From the NCBI GenBank assembly GCA_965649825.1, contig OZ287717.1, positions 11,001 through 75,000 of the forward strand: a DNA stretch of 64,000 nt, given 5' to 3'. How positions within the stretch are numbered: the first letter of the stretch is position 1; each line of letters opens with the position of its first letter. The notes beneath the pieces were generated by a model that ran no database searches, had not been told where the DNA came from, and saw nothing but the letters and a program-made list of their open reading frames with translations. Shown here piece after piece: positions 41,688 through 64,000 of this stretch. The DNA comes from Penicillus capitatus. Taxonomy: Eukaryota; Plantae; Chlorophyta. The position numbers and the translations under genes are program-made.

Positions 41688-43274
41688 ATGAAACTCGTTG
41701 CGGTCCTTCTTATCACAGTAAGTCTCCGAGAAGCATTCGTGGTTCCTTTCTATGTAACATTCGCCTTATTATGAGAGTTTGTTTAGTGTTGCCTCACCGG
41801 AGGTTACTGTAAGACCGCCGAATTCCACACACAGAGACAGTTGTTGAAGAGAGCAAAGGCATCAACAAGCACGAGTGCCAAAAGTAGCAGTTCGGAAGGT
41901 CGAGCTTCAACCGCCGCTTCAGCAAAGTCGACTGGGGGAGAAGCGGAAGCTGTGGCCACGGCAACATCGGAGGTCACGTGTTTGTGCAAAAGATGCCTCG
42001 GACGAATCTCTCGAGTCTTTTAGGCATTCACAAAAGTCAGTAACGAACTCGTGGACTACTTCGAATACGCCTTCAACAACTTGGATGAAGACCAAGGAGA
42101 CCAAACCACAGACGAGTATTGCACAAACGCCATGTCCATTCTGGAAAAGGAGCTCGAAGCAGCCGGAGAGGTCACAGCATCTGCTTATTCTGAGGCCATC
42201 GCCACCGTCGAAGTCTCAGGTATGCATCATAAAGACCAGATATGAACTTGGTGATTAAGACAGACATTTGACAGGGGAAGGAGAGGCGTGTGCCTCTGGA
42301 GATGCTTCTGCTGAAAGCCAGGCGTCTGGTTACGCAAAGGTCGTCGCTGAAGCCATAGCAGAAGCGTCCAACAAGGTTACGAAAGCTGAAGCTGAGGCGG
42401 CGGTAGAAGCAGTTGTCGAAGTCATCGCCGCAGTAAGAAAACTGCTAGTCATGCATACATTACTGAGGCTTAATGATCCCTGACCTAATATTCGACAATG
42501 TTTCGTCAATCATCAAAATCGAGATCGTGTGAATGACTGTAGGCATTTACAACTGCATTTGCAGCGGCATGTTTGTCAGGGGAGGGATCAGCTTTGGCCA
42601 TGCAGACTTCGCTTGCTCAAGCAATCAGCAGACCTCTTGCATCTGCCACTGTTTTGGTCATTGCTGAAGTCGACTGTTCCAAAAGTCCATCCATCACACA
42701 TTCTTCGTGAAATCTTGCTGATTTTGTGTCCTACAGCTGCTGGGTTTTCTGAAGTGGATGCAGCAGCCGAAGGCAGTGCTGATGAAACCATAGTTGCGGA
42801 GTCGGAAGGCACAACCGAGATCACAGGTAATAACAGAACGTCGTGGGACGAACGGCACTTGGAGATCACACGGTTCCTGTTGCATCGATGTTTTTTTGTT
42901 ACAGGTAAGGGCTCAGCAGAATCCGGGGGAGAGGCTGAAGCCTTTACTGCAACACTTGAACGCTGTTCTGGCAAATATTATCTGTGCTGTCGAGAGCGAA
43001 ACGATACTTGCACGTGCAGTTTGACAAGGTAAGCTGTATAGACTGTCAGCTGAGAGGGTCCTGTTGAGATGTTGCTGACCAACTGTCTTGCTCTCTCTAA
43101 CGACAGGCTATCTCCAACATCCAGATAACTGTGTTCTTCTTTAGCCGTTCCAAGAGATGCGATGCGGTGAGAGTGAAGTACGACGAAGGCGAGTACTGGA
43201 GTGATGATCACAACGAAGTCTATTGCAAATGCCCCACAAGACGTGCACACACAACGCATCTCCCGGTTGTTTAA
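41688..43274 (+). CDS. Secreted Ala/Ser/Glu-rich protein with a C-terminal Cys-rich domain (paralog B)
   Basis: MKLVAVLLIT| signal exon; same exon structure as 38701-40266; ends KRCDAVRVKYDEGEYWSDDHNEVYCKCP...*. Confidence 0.75.
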
Positions 43275-43846
43275 TCATGTGAACATTTTTGAATCAGATG
43301 AATTCAAAACCCACACACACTTTGGCGGACCAGGACGGTTCGTTCTCTAGTCGTTGCCATGTCTTTCTTGTTTGTGACGTTGTTGATGTTTCTAAAGCAA
43401 GCCGTTTGGCACTAAAAACCTAATGACAACTTGCAATGTTCATTTTAAGAGTGTCTGTTAGAATCGTGTGTTTACAACAATCGCCCTTCATCAAAGCTCG
43501 GCGGAATGATGCGACTTTTAAACGGCTACCACATACACAACGTTTCGCCTTGTCAGCTGGAAATCGTGACGTCAGCTTGAAAAAGGACAAAGGACGTGAA
43601 TTCCATGAGGAAGTCTTGGCACTGTGAGATCAAAATAACTTCCAACACGCCGCCTCACTCTGGTTATTCGCAACGCAGCCATTGTGTATAATGAGCCATG
43701 GCTGAGCGACATTTATCGCAGATGTTTCAACCAGACGTACAATACATTTCTGCAGCCAGACTGTATCTGCGAATTTGATTACCTCCATCGTCGAACACTC
43801 ACGTTTCCTCCTCGGCTGTTCTCTCCGAAGAGACGTTCGAATAGAA

Positions 43847-45266
43847 ATGAACGCGGAAAGCGCTCCTATTGACACCGAAACGCAAGTGGGGGCAATGCAG
43901 ATGTTGGAATAGCCGTTCTAGTTTTCTTTGCGAAAAGGGAGCTTGGCTGAAACAAGTGTCCGAAGCGGTCGAAAAGAAATCCTTCGTCAAGAGGAACGCA
44001 ACCAAACAATCCTTCAAAGTTTATGATGTGGCAGAGACAGCACCGAGGGAATACATCTGTCCCATTTCGCTGGAGCTGATGAGAGATCCTGTGCTTCTGG
44101 TCGAGACTGGACAGGTTTACGACCGTTCCTCCATAGAAGGCTGGTTTAAAGCAGGGAAAAGCAGCTGTCCGGTTTCCGGGGCAAAAGTGAAACAAATGCG
44201 ACTGAGCTCAATTTTTCCTCTACGTTCTGCTATACAAACTTATGCAAAAGAACATCAAATTGATCTGGATTATGCAGAGAGTGCATCTGAGATGGATGAG
44301 TCTCCGACAGCTGAACCTACCTTGTCTGGGAGGTTATTTGACGGGATATCTGTGTATGATATCCGCGGATTATGTCAGATGATGGACGACTCAGACTCCG
44401 GACAGAAGGCAACTGCTCTGAAATTGCTTGCTGACATGTCACGGTACAGTCGGTGTATTTGATGATCACATTGTATTGTTACGTGCATGTCGATTTGCTC
44501 TCAGATTCGGTGATACCTGTCAAAGGATGAAGATCAATCGAATCTTGGCCAAAGACAGACTCATTTCTATCTTTCAGGATTCCGAGACGGAGATGATAAA
44601 AATCCACTCCGCAAGATTGCTTCTTCACTTACCTGGTCACTACTTTGACTTGAAACAGCAGCTGAAGCTTCTAACATATAACGACTTGGTATTACGGGAG
44701 GAAGTCCTTGTGCGGTTGTGGAAACATGCTTACCGACATCGATCCAGAATGTTTGAACTTGCAACGTTCATGGAGAAGAACGGAGCTGAGGAGATCATTT
44801 CGATCTGCCGAAGACTTGCAGATCCCACTGGGAACACAGAGATTCCAGATGAAGTCTGTCAATGCACAGATGACGGTACCTTACTTAGCACTTGGGTCGT
44901 TCTGTTGTGCAGATTAGGATGTACGCGACATTTGTTCTCGCATGTGCTGCCTTCAAGAGATCGACTAGAAACACAGCAATTGACCAAGAAACCATACCAT
45001 TGTTGGTGAATCTTCTGCATTCAACGTCGAATCTTGGCTTCAGATTTTGTCTCATGAAAGCACTGCAATACTTGTCTGAAGATAGCGAGGGACGAAACCA
45101 AGTTATTCGTGCGGGTGAGTGTCAAATGTCGCATGATGTATTTCTTGCAAGAGTGCTGATTGCGCGTTATCAGGTGGCGTTCGCATCTTTGTCACACATC
45201 TGCCTCCAAGAAACAAGAATATTCACTACTCCACGCGAATCTACCTGGATTGGTTCGCATGGGTGA
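43847..45266 (+). CDS. U-box / ARM-repeat E3 ubiquitin ligase (PUB-like); start uncertain
   Basis: PREYICPISLELMRDPVLLVETGQVYDRSSIEGWF..GKSSCPVS (U-box); TIPLLVNLLHS, ALQYLSED..GRNQVIRAGG (ARM-like). Confidence 0.85.
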
Positions 45267-45520
45267 CAGTGGCCGAGACAGCAGTGAAGGCACTCTACTA
45301 TCTAGCCTTCGAGAGTCAAGGTCGGGCAGAAATGCGGACGACCGCGACGATGAAAGCCCTTCGCTTAATGGTCAATCACAGCTCATTTCCAGACACTTGC
45401 CGCTCGAGGTAAGAACTCTCAGTGACCTCCTACCCATTCCATGACCTCTTCACTGTTGGGCCCTGAACTTCTGCTATGCCTAATCGAGAATTGTGTTATT
45501 CAGGTATCTGATGCCGTTGC

Positions 45521-45961
45521 TCAGCAGGCTCTCGGCGCACGCATCATCGTAATTGTAAAAATCAACATTGATGTTGTCATGTTGACGAGTTTGATTGTAC
45601 AATGTTGCTGTTTATCACAGCCTTGATTCCTACAGTATTGGTGGCTGGATTGTCCGTCTGCAACTCGAATTAGTGCTTGCGCCCGAGACCAGTTCCTGAC
45701 ATAGTCGGTTCTTCGTCCAGTTCGGGTCGCGTGGGGGGAGCTTGGTATCGCTGCGTCAAACACGCATTTCCGTACGATGGTCGATAACGAGGGAAGTCGG
45801 TGTTTCTTTTCTCTTAGCAATTCCCAGAAATCGGCGGTCGGCGCTGCGCTGGAGTACAGGAGTTGCTCGAAGGCCGCGTCGTCGAATGTTTCTCCCGGTT
45901 CGGGTGGGAGCTGCGTAGGTTCGCCGGATGGGTTGGCTCCATACAATGACTCGGGTTCCAT
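45521..45961 (-). mobile_element. Possible hAT transposase C-terminal dimerisation-domain remnant
   Basis: EQLLY...ADFWELLREKKHRLPSLSTIVRK...AIPSS resembles the hATC pattern (WW....YP.L..LAR..L.IPASS). No catalytic core or TIRs seen. Confidence 0.35.
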
Positions 45962-46621
45962 AAGGAAGAATCAATTCCACATGTATCCTATACAGACTTA
46001 AAGGGTTTCAGTCATCTGTGGATCATCTACGTCTTCCATGAGAATACAAATTTGCACAAACGGCTTGGAGGGAAGGGATTCAAAGCAAAGATTCGAATGT
46101 CCCAATAAACGGAAGGGGAAATAGCAATTAGCATATTCGCTACAAGGACACCTCGCCGTTTCAACATATTGGCCTGAGCATAGCCAGAATTCTTCATATA
46201 AGTGTTTTCTACAATGAAGAGAAGAAATCTAAGCTGACTTACCTTTCTCGTGATAGACTGGAGTCGGATGCGTTTACTTTGCCGAGATTGAGATGACTGA
46301 TTGTCAGAGGAAAGCTTTGCGTTCTTACAGAGCTAAAGGTAAACATGCGTTCGCATCCATGTTTTCATATGCTACAGGTGACATGACACGCCATGTAAGC
46401 GCCCCTTCGGAGATGGAACCCTTGGATTCCAAGACAGTCACGATGTGACAGTCTTGTCATTCCGACACTGATGATACTCCAATTTTGGTCATCAATCCCT
46501 AAATTCCAAGCTACGATTCGGTGTTAAATGCCCAACTACCAGACAGGTCCGCTCAAGAAGAAGCCTCAAAACAAGCTACTGCACCTCGAAAGTCGCCGTT
46601 CGTCCTCCCCGGAGAGAAGAC

Positions 46622-47215
46622 ATGCATCATGATATTATGCGAAATCTCACACGACATACAGCAGGGGAAGGTGTTATGCGACTGCGTTGCAGCAAAGGCA
46701 TAGATCTGTTCACTCTTTGTTGCGCATTAAGCAATGACTTAGGACTGAACATCACCTCTTTCTGCGGACACTTCTTCGTCCGTTCTTCGGATCTGCTGTC
46801 TTTGCCGATGTGCGATCCAGACAAGGCATTTTCTGTTGCGATAAAGCACGACGAGATGGTTTTGGACGGCAACGTAGCCGGTCTGCAGTGTGCCTTGCGC
46901 GATACATCTTCCTCGGGCGAACGGCTCATCAGGTTTGCACCTCCATACGATGCATCACCCAGAGACAGATTTTCTTACAGGGTTCACACTCTGCAATCTC
47001 CTGTAAAGCATGATCTCCCAGATCTATATCGCGGAGCTGATGCTGCTGCAATCATCTCGTTGATGTCAAACTTCGAGGTAGATAGGTCATACAGTTCGAG
47101 AATCTGCTCTGCACAAAAATCGATTGAGGGAAGTCTGATTGCCGGATTGTGTGAATACACGCACTCGACCCATTCTCGCCTTCTCCTTGTACAAGAGCTC
47201 TATCAATCGGTCGTA
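46622..47215 (+). pseudogene. Sec24 fragment (beta-sandwich plus start of the helical domain), degenerate
   Basis: RNLTRHTAGEGVMRLRCSK|GLNITSFCGHFFVRSSDLLSLP, GERLIR|VHTL, LYRGADAAAI. Conserved LLYT reads LRDT; one intron has a GC donor; no zinc finger, trunk or gelsolin domain. Confidence 0.7.
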
Positions 47216-47255
47216 ATCTGCGAATTCGGCGTCGACTCGTCGAAAGCCGTACGAA

Positions 47256-47908
47256 ATGTCGAGCACGGGTCATGGGCAGCAACCGTCATCATTCAGACGG
47301 CTAGATGTACCTCTCCACGTCCGCCAAGGTTCTTTTGAGATTGAGCGCATTAAATTAAATTGTTCTTCGTCTTGGAGACTGCGTTCGTCTGTTTGGAAAT
47401 TGCGTTCATCGTTTACGTACGATGTTGTGGTCGTTTGGCAGAGGTCGCGCAATGGGTGGAGAATACGAAATTCAACAAACGGTTGCGGCTTCAGCTTGAA
47501 AGTAAGCGTACGAACGCAACTCTTTTCTGTCGTGACGGTGGCGTGTAGAAGCAGAAGAAGACAGCGAAAGCCACGGAGAGTGGTTTTATGGAATCGTCAG
47601 TGATGGCGTCCATAAAATCCCGGCATTCCTGAGGGGTATGGCCACGAATGAGGTGATGCAGTCGGGGTCGAACTTCTCTGATTTGCTCGGCATAGTGGTC
47701 GAGGTCACCGACTGCAGCATCTCCAACGCCGATTGCCAGAAGTGTGCATCTGACTCAAAAAAAACGGCGTTAGTCTCTTCTTCCTAGGGTACTTGTCATT
47801 GATGTCTGCCGTGTCCTTCGCAACCGTGCGACAGTCGGAAGTCCGATGTTCTCCGACACGGAGTACATCGGCGATCATGACATCTGTGAACGTCGACCTG
47901 TCAGCTGA
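47256..47908 (+). CDS. Small spliced OB-fold protein (TPP1/Est3- or RPA70N-like); first exon tentative
   Basis: Exons 47442-47501, 47549-47741 and 47788-47908, joined by 47- and 46-nt GT-AG introns, give AQWVEN...RLRLQLE...WFYGIVSDGVHKIPAFL...LLGIVVEVTDCSI...KVLVIDVCRVL...TVGSP in one frame. Confidence 0.6.
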
Positions 47909-47979
47909 GTCCGGGCCGGATGGCGAATCGCCCGTCCGAACACCTCGGCGTCTTGGTTCGCCTAAGTGCTGGAGCCCAG

Positions 47980-50900
47980 CGTCACATCAGGTGTAACGCG
48001 TGCTCTCAGTGACTCGCTGAAGTGCACGATGCTGCCGGCGACACGGTCGAGCGAGGGTGGGGATGGGTCAGCGGGGACGAGTGGATGCTAACGGACCCTT
48101 GGTTGGAGCCCGACGGCGGCGTTCTCGGGCTGTGGCGCGACCTTTCCGGATTCGACATTTCGGCACACTACGGCCGACGGAGGGCCCACCGTCGGCAGAC
48201 TACAACGCAGACGGGTGCGGGACGTCTCGGGACACACCGCGGATGCCGATCGGTGCAAGCTCGTTTGGCTTTGGGCGGTGTCGTACTTGGTTGAAATCGA
48301 GGCCGTTACGTCGCATCAGGTGTAACCTGGCCTGTCAGTACGATCTGGAAGTGCACGATGACGCCGGCGACACGGTCGAGCGAGGGTGGGAATGTGTCGG
48401 CGGGGTCGAGTGGATGCCGACGGACCCTTGGTTGGAGCCCGACGGCGGCGTTCTCGGGCTGTGGCGCGGCCTTTCCGGATTCGACATTTCGGCACACTGC
48501 GGCCGACGGAGGGCCCACCGTCGGCAATCTTCGACGCAGACGGGTGCGGGACGTCTCGGGACACGTCGCGGATGCCAATCGGTGCAAGCTCGTTTGGCTT
48601 TGGGCGGTGTCGTACTTGGTTGAAATCGTGGCGGTTACGTCGCATCAGGTGTAACCTGGCCTGTCAGTACGATCTGGAAGTGCACGATGACGCCGGCGAC
48701 ACGGTCCAGCGAGGGTGGGAATGTGTCGGCGGGGTCGAGTGGATGCCGACGGACCCTTGGTTGGAGCCCGACGGCGGCGTTCTCGGGCTGTGGCGCGACC
48801 TTTCCGGATTCGGCATTTCGGCACACTACGGCCGACGGAGGGCCCACCGTCGGCAGACTACAACGCAGACGGGTGCGGGACGCCTCGGGACACACCGCGG
48901 ATGCCGATCACCGGAGGTTCGTTTTGCTTTGGGCGGTGTCGTACGGAGTTGAAATCGAGGCCGTTACGTCGCATCAGGTGTAACCTGGCCTGTCAGTACG
49001 ATCTGGAAGTGCACGATGACGCCGGCGACACGGTCGAGCGAGGGTGGGAATGTGTCGGCGGGGTCGAGTGGATGCCGACGGACCCTTGGTTGGAGCCCGA
49101 CGGAGGCGTGCTCGGGCTGTGTCGCGGCCTTTCCGGATTCGACATTTCGGCAGATTGCGGCCGACGGAGGGCCCACCGTCGGCAATCTTCGACGCAGACG
49201 GGTGCGGGACGTCTCGGGACACGTCGCGGATGCCAATCGGTGCAAGCTCGTTTGGCTTTGGGCGGTGTCGTACTTGGTTGAAATCGTGGCGGTTACGTCG
49301 CATCAGGTGTAACCTGGCCTGTCAGTACGATCTGGAAGTGCACGATGACGCCGGCGACACGGTCCAGCGAGGGTGGGAATGTGTCGGAGGGGTCGAGTGG
49401 ATGCCGACGGACCCTTGGTTGGAGCCCGACGGCGGCGTTCTCGGGCTGTGGCGCGGCCTTTCCGGATTCGACATTTCGGCACACTGCGGCCGACGGAGGG
49501 CCCACCGTCGGCAATCTTCGACGCAGACGGGTGCGGGACGCCTCGGGACACACCGCGGATGCCGATCGGTGCAAGCTCGTTTGGCTTTGGGCGGTGTCGT
49601 ACGGAGTTGAAATCGAGGCCGTTACGTCGCATCAGGTGTAACCTGGCCTGTCAGTACGATCTGGAAGTGCACGATGACGCCGGCGACACGGTCGAGCGAG
49701 GGTGGGAATGTGTCGGCGGGGTCGAGTGGATGCCGACGGACCCTTGGTTGGAGCCCGACGGAGGCGTGCTCGGGCTGTGGCGCGGCCTTTCCGGATTCGA
49801 CATTTCGGCACACTGCGGCCGACGGAGGGCCCACCGTCGGCAATCTTCGACGCAGACGGGTGCGGGACGTCTCGGGACACACCGCGGATGCCGATCGGTG
49901 CAAGCTCGTTTGGCTTTGGGCGGTGTCGTACGGAGTTGAAATCGAGGCCGTTACGTCGCATCAGGTGTAACCTGGCCTGTCAGTACGATCTGGAAGTGCA
50001 CGATGACGCCGGCGACACGGTCGAGCGAGGGTGGGAATGTGTCGGCGGGGTCGAGTGGATGCCGACGGACCCTTGGTTGGAGCCCGACGGAGGCGTGCTC
50101 GGGCTGTGGCGCGGCCTTTCCGGATTCGACATTTCGGCACACTGCGGCCGACGGAGGGCCCACCGTCGGCAATCTTCGACGCAGACGGGTGCGGGACGTC
50201 TCGGGACACGTCGCGGATGCCGATCGGTGCAAGCTCGTTTGGCTTTGGGCGGTGTCGTACTTGGTTGAAATCGTGGCCGTTACGTCGCATCAGGTGTAAC
50301 CTGGCCTGTCAGTACGATCTGGAAGTGCACGATGACGCCGGCGACACGGTCGAGCGAGGGTGGGAATGTGTCGGCGGGGTCGAGTGGATGCCGACGGACC
50401 CTTGGTTGGAGCCCGACGGCGGCGTTCTCGGGCTGTGGCGCGGCCTTTCCGGATTCGACATTTCGGCACACTGCGGCCGACGGAGGGCCCACCGTCGGCA
50501 GACTACAACGCAGACGGGTGCGGGACGCCTCGGGACACACCGCGGATGCCGATCGGTGCAAGCTCGTTTGGCTTTGGGCGGTGTCGTACTTGGTTGAAAT
50601 CGAGGCCGTTACGTCGCATCAGGTGTAACCTGGCCTGTCAGTACGATCTGGAAGTGCACGATGACGCCGGCGACACGGTCCAGCGAGGGTGGGAATGTGT
50701 CGGAGGGGTCGAGTGGATGCCGACGGACCCTTGGTTGGAGCCCGACGGCGGCGTTCTCGGGCTGTGGCGCGGCCTTTCCGGATTCGACATTTCGGCACAC
50801 TGCGGCCGACGGAGGGCCCACCGTCGGCAGACTACAACGCAGACGGGTGCGGGACGCCTCGGGACACACCGCGGATGCCGATCGGTGCAAGCTCGTTTGG

Positions 50901-53900
50901 CTTTGGGCGGTGTCGTACGGAGTTGAAATCGAGGCCGTTACGTCGCATCAGGTGTAACCTGGCCTGTCAGTACGATCTGGAAGTGCACGATGACGCCGGC
51001 GACACGGTCGAGCGAGGGTGGGAATGTGTCGGCGGGGTCGAGTGGATGCCGACGGACCCTTGGTTGGAGCCCGACGGAGGCGTGCTCGGGCTGTGGCGCG
51101 GCCTTTCCGGATTCGACATTTCGGCACACTGCGGCCGACGGAGGGCCCACCGTCGGCAATCTTCGACGCAGACGGGTGCGGGACGTCTCGGGACACACCG
51201 CGGATGCCAATCGGTGCAAGCTCGTTTGGCTTTGGGCGGTGTCGTACTTGGTTGAAATCGTGGCGGTTACGTCGCATCAGGTGTAACCTGGCCTGTCAGT
51301 ACGATCTGGAAGTGCACGATGACGCCGGCGACACGGTCCAGCGAGGGTGGGAATGTGTCGGCGGGGTCGAGTGGATGCCGACGGACCCTTGGTTGGAGCC
51401 CGACGGCGGCGTTCTCGGGCTGTGGCGCGGCCTTTCCGGATTCGACATTTCGGCACACTGCGGCCGACAAAGGGCCCACCGTCGGCAGACTACAACGCAG
51501 ACGGGTGCGGGACGTCTCGGGACACACCGCGGATGCCGATCGGTGCAAGCTCGTTTGGCTTTGGGCGGTGTCGTACTTGGTTGAAATCGAGGCCGTTACG
51601 TCGCATCAGGTGTAACCTGGCCTGTCAGTACGATCTGGAAGTGCACGATGACGCCGGCAACACGGTCCAGCGAGGGTGGGAATGTGTCGGCGGGGTCGAG
51701 TGGATGCCGACGGACCCTTGGTTGGAGCCCGACGGCGGCGTTCTCGGGCTGTGGCGCGGCCTTTCCGGATTCGACATTTCGGCACACTGCGGCCGACGGA
51801 GGGCCCACCGTCGGCAGACTACAACGCAGACGGGTGCGGGACGCCTCGGGACACACCGCGGATGCCGATCACCGGAGGTTCGTTTAGCTCTGGGCGGTGT
51901 CGTACGGAGTTGAAATCGTGGCGGTTACGTCGCATCAGGTGTAACCTGGCCTGTCAGTACGATCTGGAAGTGCACGATGACGCCGGCGACACGGTCCAGC
52001 GAGGGTGGGAATGTGTCGGCGGGGTCGAGTGGATGCGGACGGACCCTTGGTTGGAGCCCGACGGAGGCGTGCTCGGGCTGTGGGGCGACCTTTCCGGATT
52101 CGACATTTCGGCACACTGCGGCCGACGGAGGGCCCACCGTCGGCAGACTACAACGCAGACGGGTGCGGGACGCCTCGGGACACACCGCGGATGCCGATCA
52201 CCGGAGGTTCGTTTGGCTTTGGGCGGTGTCGTACTTGGTTGAAATCGAGGCCGTTACGTCGCATCAGGTGTAACCTGGCCTGTCAGTACGATCTGGAAGT
52301 GCACGATGACGCCGGCGACACGGTCCAGCGAGGGTGGGAATGTGTCGGCGGGGTCGAGTGGATGCCGACGGACCCTTGGTTGGAGCCCGACGGCGGCGTT
52401 CTCGGGATGTGGCGCGACCTTTCCGGATTCGACATTTCGGCACACTACGGCCGACGGAGGGCCCACCGTCGGCAATCTTCGACGCAGACGGGTGCGGGAC
52501 GCCTCGGGACACACCGCGGATGCCGATCACCGGAGGTTCGTTTTGCTTTGGGCGGTGTCGTACGGAGTTGAAATCGTGGCCGTTACGTCGCATCAGGTGT
52601 AACCTGGCCTGTCAGTACGATCTGGAAGTGCACGATGCCGCCGGCGACACGGTCCAGCGAGGGTGGGAATGTGTCGGCGGGGTCGAGTGGATGCCGACGG
52701 ACCCTTGGTTGGAGCCCGACGGCGGCGTTCTCGGGCTGTGGCGCGACCTTTCCGGATTCGACATTTCGGCACACTGCGGCCGACGGAGGGCCCACCGTCG
52801 GCAGACTACAACGCAGACGGGTGCGGGACGCCTCGGGACACACCGCGGATGCCGATCACCGGAGGTTCGTTTTGCTTTGGGCGGTGTCGTACGGAGTTGA
52901 AATCGAGGCCGTTACGTCGCATCAGGTGTAACCTGGCCTGTCAGTACGATCTGGAAGTGCACGATGACGCCGGCAACACGGTCCAGCGAGGGTGGGAATG
53001 TGTCGGCGGGGTCGAGTGGATGCCGACGGACCCTTGGTTGGAGCCCGACGGCGGCGTTCTCGGGCTGTGGCGCGACCTTTCCGGATTCGACATTTCGGCA
53101 CACTACGGCCGACGGAGGGCCCACCGTCGGCAGACTACAACGCAGACGGGTGCGGGACGTCTCGGGACACACCGCGGATGCCGATCGGTGCAAGCTCGTT
53201 TGGCTTTGGGCGGTGTCGTACTTGGTTGAAATCGTGGCGGTTACGTCGCATCAGGTGTAACCTGGCCTGTCAGTACGATCTGGAAGTGCACGATGACGCC
53301 GGCAACACGGTCCAGCGAGGGTGGGAATGTGTCGGCGGGGTCGAGTGGATGCCGACGGACCCTTGGTTGGAGCCCGACGGCGGCGTTCTCGGGCTGTGGC
53401 GCGGCCTTTCCGGATTCGACATTTCGGCACACTGCGGCCGACAAAGGGCCCACCGTCGGCAGACTACAACGCAGACGGGTGCGGGACGTCTCGGGACACG
53501 TCGCGGATGCCGATCGGTGCAAGCTCGTTTGGCTTTGGGCGGTGTCGTACTTGGTTGAAATCGTGGCGGTTACGTCGCATCAGGTGTAACCTGGCCTGTC
53601 AGTACGATCTGGAAGTGCACGATGACGCCGGCAACACGGTCCAGCGAGGGTGGGAATGTGTCGGCGGGGTCGAGTGGATGCCGACGGACCCTTGGTTGGA
53701 GCCCGACGGCGGCGTTCTCGGGCTGTGGCGCGGCCTTTCCGGATTCGACATTTCGGCACACTGCGGCCGACGGAGGGCCCACCGTCGGCAGACTACAACG
53801 CAGACGGGTGCGGGACGTCTCGGGACACACCGCGGATGCCGATCGGTGCAAGCTCGTTTGGCTTTGGGCGGTGTCGTACTTGGTTGAAATCGAGGCCGTT

Positions 53901-56859
53901 ACGTCGCATCAGGTGTAACCTGGCCTGTCAGTACGATCTGGAAGTGCACGATGACGCCGGCGACACGGTCCAGCGAGGGTGGGAATGTGTCGGCGGGGTC
54001 GAGTGGATGCCGACGGACCCTTGGTTGGAGCCCGACGGCGGCGTTCTCGGGATGTGGCGCGGCCTTTCCGGATTCGACATTTCGGCAGATTGCGGCCGAC
54101 GGAGGGCCCACCGTCGGCAGACTACAACGCAGACGGGTGCGGGACGCCTCGGGACACACCGCGGATGCCGATCACCGGAGGTTCGTTTTGCTTTGGGCGG
54201 TGTCGTACGGAGTTGAAATCGAGGCCGTTACGTCGCATCAGGTGTAACCTGGCCTGTCAGTACGATCTGGAAGTGCACGATGACGCCGGCAACACGGTCC
54301 AGCGAGGGTGGGAATGTGTCGGCGGGGTCGAGTGGATGCCGACGGACCCTTGGTTGGAGCCCGACGGCGGCGTTCTCGGGCTGTGGCGCGGCCTTTCCGG
54401 ATTCGACATTTCGGCACACTGCGGCCGACAAAGGGCCCACCGTCGGCAGACTACAACGCAGACGGGTGCGGGACGTCTCGGGACACACCGCGGATGCCGA
54501 TCGGTGCAAGCTCGTTTGGCTTTGGGCGGTGTCGTACTTGGTTGAAATCGAGGCCGTTACGTCGCATCAGGTGTAACCTGGCCTGTCAGTACGATCTGGA
54601 AGTGCACGATGACGCCGGCGACACGGTCGAGCGAGGGTGGGAATGTGTCGGCGGGGTCGAGTGGATGCCGACGGACCCTTGGTTGGAGCCCGACGGAGGC
54701 GTGCTCGGGCTGTGGCGCGGCCTTTCCGGATTCGACATTTCGGCACACTGCGGCCGACGGAGGGCCCACCGTCGGCAATCTTCGACGCAGACGGGTGCGG
54801 GACGTCTCGGGACACACCGCGGATGCCGATCGGTGCAAGCTCGTTTGGCTTTGGGCGGTGTCGTACTTGGTTGAAATCGTGGCGGTTACGTCGCATCAGG
54901 TGTAACCTGGCCTGTCAGTACGATCTGGAAGTGCACGATGACGCCGGCGACACGGTCCAGCGAGGGTGGGAATGTGTCGGCGGGGTCGAGTGGATGCCGA
55001 CGGACCCTTGGTTGGAGCCCGACGGCGGCGTTCTCGGGCTGTGGCGCGGCCTTTCCGGATTCGACATTTCGGCACACTGCGGCCGACAAAGGGCCCACCG
55101 TCGGCAGACTACAACGCAGACGGGTGCGGGACGTCTCGGGACACGTCGCGGATGCCGATCGGTGCAAGCTCGTTTGGCTTTGGGCGGTGTCGTACTTGGT
55201 TGAAATCGTGGCGGTTACGTCGCATCAGGTGTAACCTGGCCTGTCAGTACGATCTGGAAGTGCACGATGACGCCGGCAACACGGTCCAGCGAGGGTGGGA
55301 ATGTGTCGGCGGGGTCGAGTGGATGCCGACGGACCCTTGGTTGGAGCCCGACGGCGGCGTTCTCGGGCTGTGGCGCGGCCTTTCCGGATTCGACATTTCG
55401 GCACACTGCGGCCGACGGAGGGCCCACCGTCGGCAGACTACAACGCAGACGGGTGCGGGACGTCTCGGGACACACCGCGGATGCCGATCGGTGCAAGCTC
55501 GTTTGGCTTTGGGCGGTGTCGTACTTGGTTGAAATCGAGGCCGTTACGTCGCATCAGGTGTAACCTGGCCTGTCAGTACGATCTGGAAGTGCACGATGAC
55601 GCCGGCGACACGGTCCAGCGAGGGTGGGAATGTGTCGGCGGGGTCGAGTGGATGCCGACGGACCCTTGGTTGGAGCCCGACGGCGGCGTTCTCGGGATGT
55701 GGCGCGGCCTTTCCGGATTCGACATTTCGGCAGATTGCGGCCGACGGAGGGCCCACCGTCGGCAGACTACAACGCAGACGGGTGCGGGACGCCTCGGGAC
55801 ACACCGCGGATGCCGATCACCGGAGGTTCGTTTTGCTTTGGGCGGTGTCGTACGGAGTTGAAATCGAGGCCGTTACGTCGCATCAGGTGTAACCTGGCCT
55901 GTCAGTACGATCTGGAAGTGCACGATGACGCCGGCAACACGGTCCAGCGAGGGTGGGAATGTGTCGGCGGGGTCGAGTGGATGCCGACGGACCCTTGGTT
56001 GGAGCCCGACGGCGGCGTTCTCGGGCTGTGGCGCGGCCTTTCCGGATTCGACATTTCGGCACACTGCGGCCGACAAAGGGCCCACCGTCGGCAGACTACA
56101 ACGCAGACGGGTGCGGGACGTCTCGGGACACACCGCGGATGCCGATCGGTGCAAGCTCGTTTGGCTTTGGGCGGTGTCGTACTTGGTTGAAATCGAGGCC
56201 GTTACGTCGCATCAGGTGTAACCTGGCCTGTCAGTACGATCTGGAAGTGCACGATGACGCCGGCGACACGGTCGAGCGAGGGTGGGAATGTGTCGGCGGG
56301 GTCGAGTGGATGCCGACGGACCCTTGGTTGGAGCCCGACGGAGGCGTGCTCGGGCTGTGGCGCGGCCTTTCCGGATTCGACATTTCGGCACACTGCGGCC
56401 GACAAAGGGCCCACCGTCGGCAGACTACAACGCAGACGGGTGCGGGACGTCTCGGGACACGTCGCGGATGCCGATCGGTGCAAGCTCGTTTGGCTTTGGG
56501 CGGTGTCGTACTTGGTTGAAATCGAGGCCGTTACGTCGCATCAGGTGTAACCTGGCCTGTCAGTACGATCTGGAAGTGCACGATGACGCCGGCGACACGG
56601 TCCAGCGAGGGTGGGAATGTGTCGGCGGGGTCGAGTGGATGCCGACGGACCCTTGGTTGGAGCCCGACGGCGGCGTTCTCGGGCTGTGGCGCGGCCTTTC
56701 CGGATTCGACATTTCGGCACACTGCGGCCGACAAAGGGCCCACCGTCGGCAGACTACAACGCAGACGGGTGCGGGACGCCTCGGGACACACCGCGGATGC
56801 CGATCACCGGAGGTTCGTTTGGCTCTGGGCGGTGTCGTACGGAGTTGAAATCGTGGCGG
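47980..56859. repeat. 329-bp GC/CpG-rich tandem satellite, left block (27 monomers)
   Basis: CAGGTGTAAC recurs at 47988, 48317 and onward every 329 bp; ORF-track starts are spaced by exactly 329; the first monomer is more diverged. Confidence 0.98.
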
Positions 56860-57097
56860 TGACATGGGCAAGTACGTGACGGTGGTAGACGCAACAAAGT
56901 TTCTTACAAAGATAATCAATGTGACAATAATCCTCCTTTTATAGTGTTGGGTTTCATAGGTGCTGAGTAGGTGCTGCGTAGGTTCTGGGTAGGTTCTGAT
57001 GTGACGTGGCCATTAAGAGCTGTTTGGCCATCAGTGCCTCTTACGATGATGAGGCATTTATTGGACCATCATCCTTCAGCTCTTCATCATCATGACA
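56860..57097 (-). repeat. 3' LTR (238 bp)
   Basis: Minus strand TGTCATGATG...GCCCATGTCA; by eye identical to 61157-61394; TATAAAA inside. Confidence 0.95.
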
Positions 57098-57113
57098 ATC
57101 GCTTCCCTGCGCT
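57098..57113 (-). other. Polypurine tract
   Basis: Minus-strand AGCGCAGGGAAGCGAT abutting the 3' LTR; the same sequence precedes the 3' LTR of the old copy (18422-18437). Confidence 0.85.
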
Positions 57114-57149
57114 GAACTCCGATTGAAAAAAACGTCGTGGATGATCGCG

Positions 57150-58030
57150 ATGTGCGAGAAAGGGTTTCGTGGAAGAAGAAGAAGAAACGAAACGGTAAAG
57201 TTAGGAAGAAAATGTATCGTGAATCGTCTACGGTCCGAGCCACTGCGGAGGAAGCTGGTTGCCGTGCGTCTGCGCGTGTTGATTGTCAAAGAGCAGCACC
57301 AGGGAGCCGACTAGGATGTCGGAGCAACGGTGAGAGTGGGGCAGTTGTTGGTGTGGTTGCTGGTGCTGCATCTGGTGATCGATGGCGGTCCAACGAGTTG
57401 CAAGAAGGGCGCGGTGAAAGTGAGTGGCGCGGGAATGAAGTGCGGGAGAGGTTGAGAACCGAAAGCGGTCTGTGCGGCGCTGAGTTTGGTCACCGAGTTC
57501 GGAAGCGCGTTTAGCAGTGCCTGAATCTGGGGAAGAGCTGATGTCCATTTGCCATGAGATTTGAAGGCGTTGTGGACGGCGGATGACGTCTCGGCTGAGA
57601 CGCTCGGAGGTCCCTATGCATTGGTGCGATCACGGGATGGTGCGATCACGGGATGGTGCGATCACGGGATGGTGCGGCGTTGAATTCCTCGGGCCGACAT
57701 CCAATTGGATAACTGATTGCCTACGAGCGCTGAATCGTTGTCTGTCTGCAGACACTCGGGGTTGCCGAAGAGGGCTGTCCAGCGCTCGAGCAGTTTGATG
57801 ATGGATGTCGCTTTGGCTTGCGAGGATGCCGAGAGAAGACAAAATCGTGTGCAGAGGTTCACTGCGGCGATGATATAGTTTGAGGAGCCGTCAGGCTTCA
57901 TGGGGTCGATGACGTCCATGCCTACGCACTGCCTCATAGGTTGCCACGTATTCAATGACTGCGCGACGGGCGAATCGTGGCGGGCAAAGTGTTGGCACTG
58001 GGGTTGGCGTCATCGGGACATCGACCTGTC
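57150..58030 (-). pseudogene. Integrase remnant (CxxC half of HHCC, DDE core, GPY module; no chromodomain)
   Basis: PQCQHFARHDS, CVGMDVI, LQTDND, RTIP, WLGP*TI. Contains frameshifts, stops and a 16-bp triplication before the catalytic Glu. Confidence 0.85.
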
Positions 58031-58189
58031 TTCAGATAGTTTTCCATCTGCAGGTACCACACTGGCCAGCAGTTGTGGTGTGCGGTGGCCGCAAGCGCGG
58101 GAGCTTCGGTCGTCGTTGGTCCTTTCCTGCAGAGAGGTTGAGGGTGTCTAGATGACACTGCACGAGGAAGCTCTGCTCGCTGCTTCGAC

Positions 58190-59340
58190 TCGCTTGTTTG
58201 ACAACGGTGGCGTCAGTGAAGATGGTGAGATGTTTGCCCATGAGCAGGTGCCTGTTTCTTCAGCGCCTCTTTCATTCCGAGTAGCTCAGCGTTGCCACTG
58301 GATCGGAACGGTTCACGTTGGAATCCGCCAGCTCGAAGGCGGAGGAGACGTTTAGAGTCACTGTCGAACAACGCGTACCCAAAGCCATCCTAGCGTCGAC
58401 ATACAGGTCGACATTACGGCCAGCTGCGTCAGACCGGTGATACCAGATGCGGTTGAGAGAGCGGAGGAGGGTGGCCCAGCGGTTGGGATCCTCCGCCCAG
58501 TATCGTTGGATGACTTTGGTATTGGCGTTCGTGAGTTTCGACAGGGCCGCTAAGCTGCGGCGGTCGCACTTGCAAGAGTTCAGCAACGTGCGAAAGAGTC
58601 CCGAAAACGAACGGACTGGGGTCTTCGTTTGAGGCTGCGCTGCATTGAGCGACTGCTGCAGCGGGGCCGCTAAGCTGCGGCGGAGGTCGCACTTGCAATA
58701 GTCCAGCAAGGTACGAAGGAGTCCTGAAAACGATCGGATTGCGGTCTTCGTTGATGCGGCGCTGCAGGGGGCAACTGCTGCAGCGTGCTTTGGAGGGCAA
58801 AACGCCTTCGGGCGTGAAGAGGTGTCCGAGGAGCTCGACCTCGTTAACACCGTCCTGGCACTTCTTCGGAGATGCCGTCCACCGGTATTTGTCATAGACC
58901 GTCAGCAGTTGGAGAACTGCTCTCTCGAGATCTTCTTGTGTCCGTGCTCCTACGCAGACGTCGTCGGCATAGCTCTCGATTGCCGTTCGAGTCTTCTGCT
59001 GCTTCAACTGGTCTCGTGCTTCCGCTATGGTTTCTTGAACATCTTGGTCGAAGAAAGCCATTGAGTTGATCCAACCCATCGGAAGCCGTGTGAAGGCGTA
59101 GGGCTTTCGGTCGGACACGGTGACGAAATACGGCTGGAGGCCATGTGCCAGAGGTATCTGCGAGAATCCGTGTCGGAAATCAAACTGCGCATAGTGGCGC
59201 ATCCCGGACAGGTTCTGAACTGCGCCTTCTCGATGCATGGGCAGCGCGGGACTCCTTGTGGTCAGCGTGTTGAGTCCGCGAAAGTCTAGCACTACTCGCC
59301 GCTCGAGCGAGTTCTTCTTCGGAACAGTAAACCAGGGGAT
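58190..59340 (-). pseudogene. Reverse transcriptase plus RNase H remnant
   Basis: LDFRGLN, FDFRHGFSQI, RLPMGWINS, YADD, SPKKC, LLGH; thumb-like IRSFSGL; RNase H VDLYVDA and GKHLTIFTD. Frameshifted. Confidence 0.9.
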
Positions 59341-59913
59341 GATGTGCTTCGGTTTTCCGTGAAATCGGCTAACGACTCCGGCTTCGATGAGTGCGTCGAT
59401 CTCGTTTCTGCATGCCGTCGTTTCAGCAGCGAACGTGTAGGGAACTTTGGTAAAGACCGAATGTAGTTGCCCTTGTACGTCGCGGATGCCGACCTCCCAT
59501 CCCGAAGAACGTCCAATTTTTCACAAAGTACGTCTGGGAATCGGGCCAGCAGCTGTTCGAGACTGCAGCAGCCAATTTTTAGGCTTCTGCGACAGTATGC
59601 CTGACTGCAAGCGTACTGCCGTTTGGGAAAAGGTGGTCTGTTGCTTCTCAACGGATGTGGGTTTCCGTTGCAATCGCACGCGGTATACTCGACGTCTTGT
59701 CTTGTGGGCACGTCCAAGATCGTCGTTCTTCCAGTTATCTTCACTGGTTCCGCGGCATGGTTGGCGAGCGTTGAGAACGTGTGGTACTGCACACCGAGGT
59801 GTACCGAGTATCGCGGTGCCACGGTCGGAACCCTCTTGTACACGAGTGCGCCGGGGAGCACGTTCGGCGTCTGAGCATCCTGCTCTCTCGTGGTCCGAGC
59901 ACGATTGACCGGT

Positions 59914-60450
59914 TCAACGGCACCTGCAGCCGTTCTTCGGTGATTCTCGGTAGATGATCGACTTTTTCGGTGCAGCGGCATATCTTCTCATGCGCGATCT
60001 CATTGGCCGCCCTTTTGTCGGCTTTCGGTCCTGTGAAGTGGCATTTGACCTGTCGCCTCTGATGCTGATAGATCTGTCGTGGGGATGCGCGGAGATCTTA
60101 CTGTCGATCATCGCGCGCATGCACAGTAGTAGATCGTAGCCGTGCCTCGGTAGTACGAGGCAACTCATGGAGAATTGTTGGTCGGAGGATTGCGCCAGGG
60201 CTGCCTGGAAGTCGCATCGTCCGGTGACCTTCGCGGTCTCTCCATGGGCCAACAGCAGACGGGTCTCGTCTGGCCTGACCTTCACTCCCAGTTCTTTCGC
60301 TCGTGCCGGGGATACAATGGAGGACTCGGCGCCAAAATCAACTAAAGCGTTAATATGGCGTGGATATCCCAAATGGCTCGGGGAGAGGAGACCAAGTTTT
60401 AAAACTCTCCTGGTCTTGGTGACCGCTCTAACGGTGTGTGCGAACTGCAC
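59914..60450 (-). pseudogene. Retropepsin (aspartic protease) domain
   Basis: INALVDFGAESSIVS...AKELG...LLAHG...YDLLL. The catalytic motif reads DFG instead of D(S/T)G. Confidence 0.8.
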
Positions 60451-61150
60451 ATCCTGTTCCGTTGGGTCTTCTTCTGTCTCGCTGATGGTCTCGCAGACGT
60501 GTGCTTCGTTTCCTTTCGGCAGAGACTTCTCTGCGGCGAAGGCACGACGCCCATTCCATTCCTCGACTGGCCTGCTGCTCTTCGTGGCCTTGTCGATGCA
60601 TTGCTCGAATTGTTGATCTTTTGTAAGAACTTCAGCATGTTGAGCGCCTCTCGTCTGGAGGTTCTGCAGATGTCCCTGGCTCCGATCATGATTCTTCCAG
60701 CGTTAGAGATCGCTGAAAAGTTGATCGAGCCGTCGTCGCCGATCACTCTTCCGTCGGCGGCAACGTTGACCAATGGCGTCGTCGCCACATCGGGGTCAAT
60801 AGGATCATGATCTGCGTCCGTTCGCGTCAACATGCTCGACTCCCAGAAGCTAGCGTTCCTGAGGACAGTGGTCATGTCCTCAGTTTTGAGGCGCAGAACC
60901 TCGTCGGCAAAAATAGTGCAAACTATGGCCGCGGGTCCGGCAAAAGGCCTCATTGAATGCTGCCTGCGTTCGAAAGCGCGGTCCGACTCGGTCGAGGACC
61001 CGCTGTATCAGATCGAAGGCAGGCGATCTGGGCTCCACCCTCTGAACCACGTACTTGATGCGAGGGCGGTAATCGTCCTCGACGAAGGCTGCCGAGTTGA
61101 GAAGGGACGTGAACTCCTCACAGTCCATCTTCGAAAGTCGCCGCTCCGAA
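60399..61150 (-). pseudogene. gag-like region, frameshifted and internally deleted
   Basis: MDCEEFTSLLNSAAFVEDDYRPR and VLRNASFWES...GRVIGDDGSINFSAI..AGR.MIGAR are shared with ORF 16287-17219, which has ~85 extra codons between them. Confidence 0.75.
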
Positions 61151-61154
61151 ACCA
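61141..61154 (-). other. Primer-binding site
   Basis: Minus-strand TGGTTTCGGAGCGG, 2 nt after the 5' LTR; the old copy has TGGTTTCGGAGCC. Confidence 0.8.
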
Positions 61155-61156
61155 AT

Positions 61157-61394
61157 TGACATGGGCAAGTACGTGACGGTGGTAGACGCAACAAAGTTTC
61201 TTACAAAGATAATCAATGTGACAATAATCCTCCTTTTATAGTGTTGGGTTTCATAGGTGCTGAGTAGGTGCTGCGTAGGTTCTGGGTAGGTTCTGATGTG
61301 ACGTGGCCATTAAGAGCTGTTTGGCCATCAGTGCCTCTTACGATGATGAGGCATTTATTGGACCATCATCCTTCAGCTCTTCATCATCATGACA
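61157..61394 (-). repeat. 5' LTR (238 bp)
   Basis: Identical by eye to 56860-57097; followed on the minus strand by AT and the PBS. Confidence 0.95.
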
Positions 61395-64000
61395 GCGGTT
61401 ACGTCGCATCAGGTGTAACCTGGCCTGTCAGTACGATCTGGAAGTGCACGATGACGCCGGCGACACGGTCGAGCGAGGGTGGGAATTTGTCGGCGGGGTC
61501 GAGTGGATGCCGACGGACCCTTGGTTGGAGCCCGACGGCGGCGTTCTCGGGCTGTGGCGCGACCTTTCCGGATTCGACATTTCGGCACACTGCGGCCGAC
61601 GGAGGGCCCACCGTCGGCCGTCTTCGACGCAGACGGGTGCGGGACGCCTCGGGACACGTCGCGGATGCCGATCGGTGGAGGCTCGTTTTGCTTTGGGCGG
61701 TGTCGTACGGAGTTGAAATCGTGGCCGTTACGTCGCATCAGGTGTAACCTGGCCTGTCAGTACGATCTGGAAGTGCACGATGCCGCCGGCGACACGGTCC
61801 AGCGAGGGCGGGAATGGGTCGGCGGGGTCGAGTGGATGCCGACGGACCCTTGGTTGGAGCCCGACGGCGGCGTTCTCGGGCTGTGGCGCGGCCTTTCCGG
61901 ATTCGACATTTCGGCACACTACGGCCGACGGAGGGCCCACCGTCGGCAGACTACAACGCAGACGGGTGCGGGACGCCTCGGGACACACCGCGGATGCCGA
62001 TCACCGGAGGTTCGTTTTGCTTTGGGCGGTGTCGTACGGAGTTGAAATCGAGGCCGTTACGTCGCATCAGGTGTAACCTGGCCTGTCAGTACGATCTGGA
62101 AGTGCACGATGACGCCGGCAACACGGTCCAGCGAGGGTGGGAATGTGTCGGCGGGGTCGAGTGGATGCCGACGGACCCTTGGTTGGAGCCCGACGGCGGC
62201 GTTCTCGGGCTGTGGCGCGGCCTTTCCGGATTCGACATTTCGGCAGATTGCGGCCCACGGAGGGCCCACCGTCGGCAATCTTCGACGCAGACGGGTGCGG
62301 GACGCCTCGGGACACACCGCGGATGCCGATCGGTGCAAGCTCGTTTGGCTTTGGGCGGTGTCGTACTTGGTTGAAATCGAGGCGGTTACGTCGCATCAGG
62401 TGTAACCTGGCCTGTCAGTACGATCTGGAAGTGCACGATGACGCCGGCGACACGGTCCAGCGAGGGTGGGAATGTGTCGGCGGGGTCGAGTGGATGCCGA
62501 CGGACCCTTGGTTGGAGCCCGACGGCGGCGTTCTCGGGCTGTGGCGCGGCCTTTCCGGATTCGACATTTCGGCACACTGCGGCCGACGGAGGGCCCACCG
62601 TCGGCAATCTTCGACGCAGACGGGTGCGGGACGCCTCGGGACACACCGCGGATGCCGATCACCGGAGGTTCGTTTGGCTCTGGGCGGTGTCGTACGGAGT
62701 TGAAATCGTGGCGGTTACGTCGCATCAGGTGTAACCTGGCCTGTCAGTACGATCTGGAAGTGCACGATGACGCCGGCAACACGGTCCAGCGAGGGTGGGA
62801 ATGTGTCGGCGGGGTCGAGTGGATGCCGACGGACCCTTGGTTGGAGCCCGACGGCGGCGTTCTCGGGCTGTGGCGCGGCCTTTCCGGATTCGACATTTCG
62901 GCACACTGCGGCCGACGGAGGGCCCACCGTCGGCAGACTACAACGCAGACGGGTGCGGGACGCCTCGGGACACACCGCGGATGCCGATCGGTGCAAGCTC
63001 GTTTGGCTTTGGGCGGTGTCGTACTTGGTTGAAATCGAGGCGGTTACGTCGCATCAGGTGTAACCTGGCCTGTCAGTACGATCTGGAAGTGCACGATGAC
63101 GCCGGCGACACGGTCGAGCGAGGGTGGGAATGTGTCGGCGGGGTCGAGTGGATGCGGACGGACCCTTGGTTGGAGCCCGACGGAGGCGTGCTCGGGCTGT
63201 GGCGCGGCCTTTCCGGATTCGACATTTCGGCACACTGCGGCCGACGGAGGGCCCACCGTCGGCAGACTACAACGCAGACGGGTGCGGGACGCCTCGGGAC
63301 ACACCGCGGATGCCGATCACCGGAGGTTCGTTTTGCTTTGGGCGGTGTCGTACGGAGTTGAAATCGAGGCCGTTACGTCGCATCAGGTGTAACCTGGCCT
63401 GTCAGTACGATCTGGAAGTGCACGATGACGCCGGCGACACGGTCCAGCGAGGGTGGGAATGTGTCGGCGGGGTCGAGTGGATGCCGACGGACCCTTGGTT
63501 GGAGCCCGACGGCGGCGTTCTCGGGCTGTGGCGCGGCCTTTCCGGATTCGACATTTCGGCACACTGCGGCCGACGGAGGGCCCACCGTCGGCAGACTACA
63601 ACGCAGACGGGTGCGGGACGCCTCGGGACACACCGCGGATGCCGATCACCGGAGGTTCGTTTGGCTCTGGGCGGTGTCGTACGGAGTTGAAATCGTGGCG
63701 GTTACGTCGCATCAGGTGTAACCTGGCCTGTCAGTACGATCTGGAAGTGCACGATGACGCCGGCAACACGGTCCAGCGAGGGTGGGAATGTGTCGGCGGG
63801 GTCGAGTGGATGCCGACGGACCCTTGGTTGGAGCCCGACGGCGGCGTTCTCGGGCTGTGGCGCGGCCTTTCCGGATTCGACATTTCGGCACACTGCGGCC
63901 GACGGAGGGCCCACCGTCGGCAGACTACAACGCAGACGGGTGCGGGACGCCTCGGGACACACCGCGGATGCCGATCGGTGCAAGCTCGTTTGGCTTTGGG
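61395..64000. repeat. 329-bp satellite, right block (~8 monomers, continues past the window)
   Basis: Same monomer and 329-bp spacing resume immediately after the TSD. Confidence 0.98.

Follow-up and report, generated by a model that had tools for sequence, protein, structure and literature searches.

A recently inserted, non-autonomous Ty3/gypsy-type retrotransposon in a 329-bp satellite array of Penicillus capitatus, probably mobilised in trans

The stretch of DNA analysed here (referred to as the window: 64,000 nucleotides of Penicillus capitatus, positions 11,001 to 75,000 of contig OZ287717.1, assembly GCA_965649825.1) contains a tandem satellite of 329-bp period, and inside this array lies an insert of 4,535 bp (56860-61394), with two terminal repeats of 238 bp each. 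This insert is classified as a small long terminal repeat (LTR) retrotransposon of Ty3/gypsy type, whose coding strand is the minus strand. It is likely that the locus represents the recent integration, into a satellite monomer, of an element which was already disabled and non-autonomous, and which was mobilised in trans. In fact, the anatomy of the element, the lesions found again at other loci and the conservation of the cis-acting parts are read directly in the sequences, and from them we infer trans-complementation and the possible identity of the donor.

The relatives used for comparison (loci numbered with L and entries of the protein collection numbered with P) all come from the metagenome assembly ERZ25074695 of the European Nucleotide Archive (ENA), which derives from the same organism as the window. 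Word-seeded protein searches with the reverse transcriptase (RT) and with an integrase (IN) found relatives only in this assembly, and nine loci were fetched and compared with the window copy piece by piece. The metagenome collection of the Joint Genome Institute (JGI) was also scanned, with a 34-mer that is invariant in the LTR and with a satellite 26-mer, giving 0 matches for each.

Insertion site and termini of the element

The two LTRs are 100% identical over their 238 bp, and the insert is bounded by a 4-bp target-site duplication (TSD), GCGG, located at 56856-56859 (the last 4 bp of the left array) and at 61395-61398. The monomer spacing over the insertion is 4868 = 329 + 4535 + 4, so that the phase of the array is kept, and the interrupted monomer, once rejoined (ATCGTGGCGG up to the junction, followed by TTAC), matches the uninterrupted monomer at 62671. 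According to Tandem Repeats Finder (TRF), the left array spans 48019-56857, while the right one runs from 61395 to 64000, the end of the window; both show 95-96% matches (96% for the left array) and 0% indels. The guanine-cytosine (GC) content of the satellite is 64%, versus about 47% in the remaining window. The preliminary description of this stretch had claimed LTR identity, an intact GCGG duplication, preserved array phase and flanks free of indels, all of which were reproduced here, although the minus-strand orientation of the element was a detail absent from it.

The LTRs end in TG...CA in either orientation, and in TGTCA...TGTCA when read in the orientation of the element, with a box, TATAAAAGG, inside, which is taken as a putative TATA box. 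A primer-binding site (PBS)-like motif of 12 nucleotides, beginning with TGG, and a polypurine tract (PPT) are both found at the expected positions. The same 12-mer occurs, identical, in the sister families L001 and L012 and in an older relative within the window, at 16306. No tRNA matching this site was found in the window, and no tRNA at all in 11 related loci. The tRNA-like sequence at 19127-19197 was considered as its partner and rejected, its 3' end being mismatched and the sequence forming the head of a dispersed 408-bp repeat. The features of the locus are as follows, E2 being the older in-window relative.

48019..56859, plus strand: left arm of the 329-bp satellite array (TRF, period 329, 26.9 copies; GC profile)
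56860..57097, minus strand: 3' LTR, 238 bp, 100% identical to 61157-61394 (LTR alignment with 6 other copies)
57098..57112, minus strand: polypurine tract GCGCAGGGAAGCGAT adjoining the 3' LTR (kept in all family copies, in L001, in L012 and in E2)
57113..58047, minus strand: integrase remnant (Pfam rve, E=4.6e-8; tblastn with the L006 integrase)
57622..57676, minus strand: perfect 16-bp x3.4 tandem repeat (TGGTGCGATCACGGGA) in the integrase core (TRF, 100% matches)
58000..58553, minus strand: RT connection and RNase H remnant (tblastn with L001, P0011 and P0017; indel table)
58004..58006, minus strand: junction of a 250-bp deletion, integrase amino acids (aa) 17-98 lost (alignments against L006 and other copies; tblastn)
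58554..58799, minus strand: 123-bp tandem duplication of the RT thumb, two units (repeat search; translation; unit comparison)
58786..59517, minus strand: RT fingers and palm, open, YADD kept (Pfam RVT_1, E=4e-16; tblastn; translation)
59616..60558, minus strand: protease region, spread over three frames (Pfam Asp_protease_2, E=4.5e-7)
60555..61128, minus strand: gag remnant (tblastn with the gag-protease of L001, L005 and L012; check of open reading frames)
61143..61154, minus strand: PBS-like motif TGGTTTCGGAGC, 2 nucleotides past the 5' LTR (same 12-mer in all family copies)
61157..61394, minus strand: 5' LTR, 238 bp, 100% identical to 56860-57097
61395..64000, plus strand: right satellite arm, in phase, with the right TSD GCGG at 61395-61398 (direct reading and TRF)

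Classification and coding remnants

On the minus strand, the Pfam matches follow one another as Asp_protease_2, RVT_1 and rve, that is, a layout of protease (PR), RT and IN, and RT_RNaseH and Integrase_H2C2 are found by Pfam at the expected places in L006, L012 and P0011. Among solved structures, the closest to the sister-family pol in the search ranking is Ty3 Gag-Pol (7q5b, E=6e-35), well ahead of spumaviral Pol (E of about 1e-17) and, lower, of caulimovirus and retroviral RTs. The assignment to the Ty3/gypsy type is made because the domain order is PR-RT-RNase H (RH)-IN and because Ty3 Gag-Pol is the closest solved relative. TSDs of 4 bp, within the 4-6 bp expected of Ty3/gypsy elements, recur in the family, as seen in the window (GCGG) and in L006 (GTGT), and one is also found in the sister L001 (GTAG).

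The interior of the window copy is heavily damaged. The gag starts with an ATG at 61128-61126, its open reading frame (ORF) stopping after 82 codons, and about 95-105 aa are missing between 60934 and 60878 relative to the gag-PR ORFs of 602-646 aa found in the sisters; past this deletion gag lies in another frame, with three further frame changes in its remainder. The protease motif reads VDFGAES, with D at 60339-60337, F at 60336-60334 and G at 60333-60331. From the catalytic triads of retropepsins, a DFG in this position would mean loss of function. The fingers and palm of the RT, which share 73% aa identity with the sister-family RT, are followed by the duplicated thumb (units 58554-58676 and 58677-58799, motif ..RSFSGL.RTLL..CKCD.RSLAA.., mutual identity 84-86%), while the RNase H part has lost 79 bp at about 58125, changes frame twice and contains stops at 58274, 58262 and 58215. 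In the integrase, aa 1-16 are fused to aa 99 onward, the 250-bp deletion having taken HH and the first C of the H2C2 zinc finger. Both D residues persist in the rve core (57665-58009), and the 16-bp repeat shifts the frame ahead of the catalytic glutamate and adds stops, so the region of the catalytic E is out of frame; integrase stops stand at 57664, 57632, 57616, 57230 and 57203. Altogether, the homology-guided frames (tblastn) contain at least 8 stops and at least 7 frame changes, and the window copy cannot encode its own Gag, PR, RT-RH and IN. Every lesion listed in the preliminary description (gag deletion, DFG, thumb duplication, loss of the integrase HH, 16-bp repeat and stops) is thus present in the sequence, and chance is ruled out as the source of any of the LTR, TSD or lesion features listed.

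Lesions held in common with other copies of the family

The preliminary description had proposed a search for other copies carrying the same lesions, and such copies exist: L006, L007/L008 and L002/L009 carry them. L006 (4689-9437) is a complete copy with identical LTRs, its own TSD (GTGT) and an LTR 97.9% identical to that of the window, whereas L004 is an older truncated copy, and L001, L003, L005 and L012 belong to sister families, with about 70% nucleotide identity. L007 and L008 match the window copy at 97-100% identity. L002 and L009 represent a single locus twice: their flanks are identical, the 5' truncation of the element falls at internal position ~1298 in each, and they look like duplicates or alleles of one rearranged locus; both include extra segments of about 341 and 230 bp (L002:5092-5427 and 7761-7987; L009:6092-6427 and 8765-8991), which are in no other copy. 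In L006, L007, L002/L009 and L004, the exact LTR end meets differing, non-satellite DNA.

The lesions can be followed from copy to copy. The 82-codon gag ORF has the same length in the window, L006 and L008, and L006 also has the gag frame changes of the window copy. The DFG is found in the window, L006 and L008, while L004, L001, L005 and L012 have DTG. The 123-bp thumb duplication is present in L002, L004, L007, L008 and L009, and absent from L006 and from the sister families. Deletions of 79, 250 and 40 bp are common to L007, L008, L002, L009 and the window copy, and the length of the expanded 16-bp repeat region is common to the window, L007 and L008 within 3-bp indels, this region being 29 bp shorter in L006 and 35 bp shorter in L002/L009. 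Judged from these alignments, almost all lesions are inherited rather than private to the window copy. Two complete insertions, the window copy and L006, have the disabled gag and protease in common, and the pol damage recurs at three further loci.

Several of them are old family traits and not recent damage. The 123-bp duplication, in particular, is old, because its units are only 84% alike and because it is already found in the older L004. The possibility that it marks a chimeric junction of two lineages was considered and rejected, since both units are about equally far from the single unit of L006 (each being 83-85% identical to it) and since L004 already has it.

Mobilisation in trans and candidate helpers

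Since the lesions are common to independent insertions, the genomes concerned were defective before integration, and the proteins would have been supplied in trans. The following course of events may be proposed. The lineage would have been disabled before integration (82-codon gag, DTG changed to DFG, duplicated RT thumb, zinc finger lost, RNase H damaged), while retaining all its cis-acting parts, namely LTRs with TG..CA ends and TATA box, the 12-nucleotide PBS and the PPT. Its RNA would then have been packaged, reverse-transcribed and integrated by the Gag, protease, RT and integrase of elements of the same superfamily residing in the same genome, the identical LTRs being produced by reverse transcription and the 4-bp duplication by integration. 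The donor could be a near-intact sister family, or else an unsampled lineage behind the intact RH-IN segment of L006. The landing in the satellite looks like one insertion among several, and not like an established case of targeting. The earlier proposal of a recent defective element copied in trans gains support from L006, which is an independent insertion with its own TSD and identical LTRs, together with the same gag truncation and DFG.

The autonomous helper proposed at the same time is a different matter: trans-copying is supported, but no specific helper could be pointed out, the best candidates each having at least one lesion. L012 (3484-8287) is a nearly intact element of 4.8 kb, with 142-bp LTRs 99% identical; its gag-PR ORF reaches 602 aa and includes DTG, a single frameshift interrupts the RT, and RH-IN is intact. 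L001 (3925-8440) has 203-bp LTRs 100% identical and GTAG as its TSD; gag-PR and RT-RH are open in it, no integrase ORF being called. Because PBS, PPT and TGTCA termini are the same in L001, L012 and the window family, cross-mobilisation by sister families is mechanistically plausible as far as the cis signals indicate. Moreover, the identical LTRs and intact TSDs of L006 and L001 indicate that the superfamily has been recently active. As regards translation, the RT lies in frame -1 relative to gag-PR in L001, L005 and L012, which suggests that, in the superfamily, protease and RT overlap or are linked by a native frameshift.

L006 is a mosaic. Its identity with the window copy is 97-100% over the part that begins with the 5' LTR and ends with the RT palm, falls to 81-91% between thumb and PPT, and stands at 97.9% in the LTR; in the divergent segment the thumb is unduplicated and the integrase zinc finger intact. 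A second copy of this integrase type, 91% identical, is found in P0015. The mosaic probably arose by template switching between co-packaged RNAs, one from the defective lineage and the other from a more intact, unsampled one, and would be an indirect sign of a closer helper. L006 itself was considered as the intact helper and discarded, since its gag is likewise cut to 82 codons, its protease reads DFG and its pol has two in-frame stops.

Some observations weigh against a recent insertion mobilised in trans. No related pol ORF of at least 900 aa is present in the protein collection, the longest ones (711-730 aa) being broken at differing places, and no fully intact helper was found, every sister copy examined having at least one break. 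For L007, L008 and L002/L009, which are truncated or run off their contigs, no TSD can be read. The window copy has five private 1-bp indels, located in or next to short homopolymer runs (60084, 59580, 58794, 58004 and 57132), which could be assembly errors or slippage, although the proposed history does not depend on them. Finally, the two LTRs are known from assembled sequence.

In a possible alternative, considerably less probable than the history proposed, there is no dedicated helper, and mobility results from mutual complementation among many differently broken copies of the window and sister families, each of which would supply one working protein. In fact, the parts are available separately: gag-PR ORFs of 602-645 aa in L012, L001 and L005, unbroken RT ORFs in L001, P0016 and P0017, and an intact RH-IN in P0011-P0013, no single copy having the full set. 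Nevertheless, the sample consists of one metagenome assembly and a word-seeded protein search, where an intact master copy could easily be missed, and Gag would have to package RNA across families.

Going beyond the trans-mobilised insertion itself, a broader and rather speculative scenario may be put forward, to which we give little credence as a whole. Here the disabled lineage would have been an obligate parasite since before the split of L004 (about 7% nucleotide divergence), using the PBS, PPT and LTR ends common to the sister families and swapping segments with its helper by template switching, while the 329-bp arrays would be a tolerated landing zone and possibly centromeres.

The satellite and the question of a centromeric association

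The preliminary description had also associated the element with a putative centromere. In its strongest form, this would make it a centromere-targeting retrotransposon, parasitising a centromeric helper, and the 329-bp satellite the centromere repeat. The insertion does lie inside a long homogeneous satellite, and this satellite is multi-locus, being found on at least 9 contigs when a satellite-borne ORF is used as proxy. A second array (L013) is adjoined by another, unrelated retroelement, and the arrays are under-assembled, so insertions within them are under-sampled. On the other hand, when insertion sites inside and outside the satellite were tabulated, as had been proposed, 1 fell inside and 4 outside (n=5): four of the five independent family sites are in non-satellite DNA, in a sample which is small and biased against repeats. 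By Pfam, the integrase tail of the P0011 pol contains no chromodomain or recognised targeting module, matching only Integrase_p58_C (E=9e-4) and SH3_Tf2-1 (E=0.05), and the L006 integrase gives a faint match to Integrase_p58_C. Both arrays examined reach contig ends and have a degenerate boundary monomer in common, which fits a subtelomeric position as well as a centromeric one; no telomere-type repeats were found beside the arrays. A centromere-targeting element is therefore unlikely, and the claimed centromere link, with 1 of 5 family sites in satellite and the satellite itself spread over at least 9 contigs, reaching the contig end in each of the two arrays examined, is not supported.

In relation to the proxy, it should be mentioned that stop-free stretches of the GC-rich satellite (48057-48623 and array-wide) have been called as 186-aa 'proteins'. 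These are spurious, as are the corresponding entries P0020-P0036 of the protein collection, which served to locate the satellite contigs.

Private changes and age of the insertion

About 27 substitutions among approximately 3,950 internal columns (0.68%) are private to the window copy, and there are 0 differences between its LTRs. Had all private changes followed integration, the LTRs should differ at about 3 positions, which argues that most of the private changes predate integration and would come from a source copy outside the sample. As for the private indels, those at 60084 and 59580 are 1-bp insertions in the protease region and that at 58004 is a 1-bp deletion in a C run. Real mutation is favoured for them, because the satellite is without indels and the unique flank has none either when compared with an independent contig.

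The reverse history, an old insertion whose LTRs are identical through LTR-LTR gene conversion or assembly collapse and whose lesions arose in place in an autonomous element, is very improbable: LTR identity is indeed known from the assembly, and the array resists assembly, since the public contig stops inside it at 53642 after 1.5 kb of inverted satellite, but the large lesions are all common to copies at other loci and so did not arise in place, the internal part of the window copy is 97-99% identical to L007/L008, L006 and L001 likewise have identical LTRs and intact TSDs, which speaks for recent activity, and a collapse of LTRs would not yield a perfect 4-bp TSD together with a kept array phase.

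Locus context and other features of the window

The public contig ERZ25074695:ctg340429_39x_l (L011, 1-17021), which was matched through two window ORFs, corresponds to window 36622-53642 and ends inside the array at 53642, its last 1.5 kb being inverted satellite. It is 99.06% identical to the window over 15.5 kb, with three clustered single-nucleotide differences in the unique part (45632, 45657 and 45666) and about 1% difference in the array, so that the window is another haplotype or assembly of this organism. An empty-site test on this contig was attempted and set aside, since its end lies 3.2 kb short of the insertion site and is uninformative on whether the site is filled or empty.

Neighbour genes on the related contigs include CFAP298 and lycopene cyclase, and the domains found in the window are NACHT/WD40, BTB-SPRY and Sec23. 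The host is read as a flagellated, possibly photosynthetic eukaryote. In three adjacent ORFs at 443-3588 (plus strand), an NWD1-like winged helix precedes WD40 repeats; these ORFs are predicted to form one NLR-like (nucleotide-binding, leucine-rich-repeat-like) NACHT/WD40 gene, split by introns or frameshifted.

The older relative of the element (E2) occupies 2.6 kb at 16079-18657 (plus strand). Its LTRs, of about 220-224 bp, are some 79-93% alike over the repeat blocks found; the PBS TGGTTTCGGAGC is at 16306 and the PPT GCGCAGGGAAGCGAT at 18423-18437, with a likely 4-bp TSD, CTGG/CTGC. The interior consists of gag-like and integrase C-terminal parts, 70-87% identical to the main element, without PR, RT or RNase H, so that E2 is an internally deleted, non-autonomous derivative of the same superfamily.

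The 408-bp dispersed repeat is present at 19127-19533 of the window (plus strand), at L007:5656-6063 and at L013:2893-3300, the two copies outside the window being 99.3% identical. It is headed by the only Rfam tRNA match in the window (19127-19197), which has an odd anticodon loop and is not called by ARAGORN, and its window copy lies between direct repeats of 14 bp, CCCCTCTCCAACGA, at 19113-19126 and 19528-19541. On these features, the repeat looks like a young tRNA-derived short interspersed nuclear element.

Relation to known systems and significance

Defective or non-coding LTR elements which parasitise a related autonomous family are known from barley (BARE-2 on BARE-1) and rice (Dasheng on RIRE2). 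As in these pairs, the window lineage has a defective gag and has spread nonetheless, has cis sequences in common with its putative helper and is represented by many copies with young LTRs. Unlike Dasheng, it keeps remnants of all pol domains, and whereas BARE-2 lacks mainly Gag, here gag, PR, RH and IN are damaged together. Large retrotransposon derivatives (LARD) and terminal-repeat retrotransposons in miniature (TRIM) are non-autonomous LTR elements without recognisable coding domains, which depend on proteins in trans while keeping their cis elements. That dependence and the working cis elements are found here too; the window copy is still domain-bearing, so it is not a strict LARD or TRIM. 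It can also be likened to CRR and noaCRR, an autonomous/non-autonomous centromeric pair of rice.

In the centromeres of wheat relatives, Cereba mobilises Quinta (PMC12477314). In this pair (RLG_Cereba/RLG_Quinta), Quinta resembles the window element in being of Ty3/gypsy type and lacking working genes while having intact LTRs, PBS and PPT, freshly inserted in tandem repeats and presumed to be moved by a relative (PMC12477314); in contrast, here the partner is a candidate one, 1 of 5 sites is in satellite, the satellite is at most a putative centromere repeat and the host is not a grass. ATHILA insertions are found in the CEN180 satellite arrays of Arabidopsis, where, as in the window, copies with young LTRs break a homogeneous satellite with the phase kept around a short TSD (PMC12477314). 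Nevertheless, the ATHILA invaders include intact elements and are demonstrably associated with centromeres (PMC12477314), neither of which holds for the window family.

The element is a further example of a well-known phenomenon, that is, defective LTR elements which spread on the proteins of their relatives and form young insertions in satellite DNA. It shows that the host genome contains a Ty3/gypsy-type superfamily which is active now or was so recently, and which includes a clear non-autonomous lineage, and the insertion provides a dated marker inside a satellite array, useful mainly for the transposable-element annotation of the genome. If the arrays were to be centromeres, the locus would give a handle on centromere turnover in this lineage.

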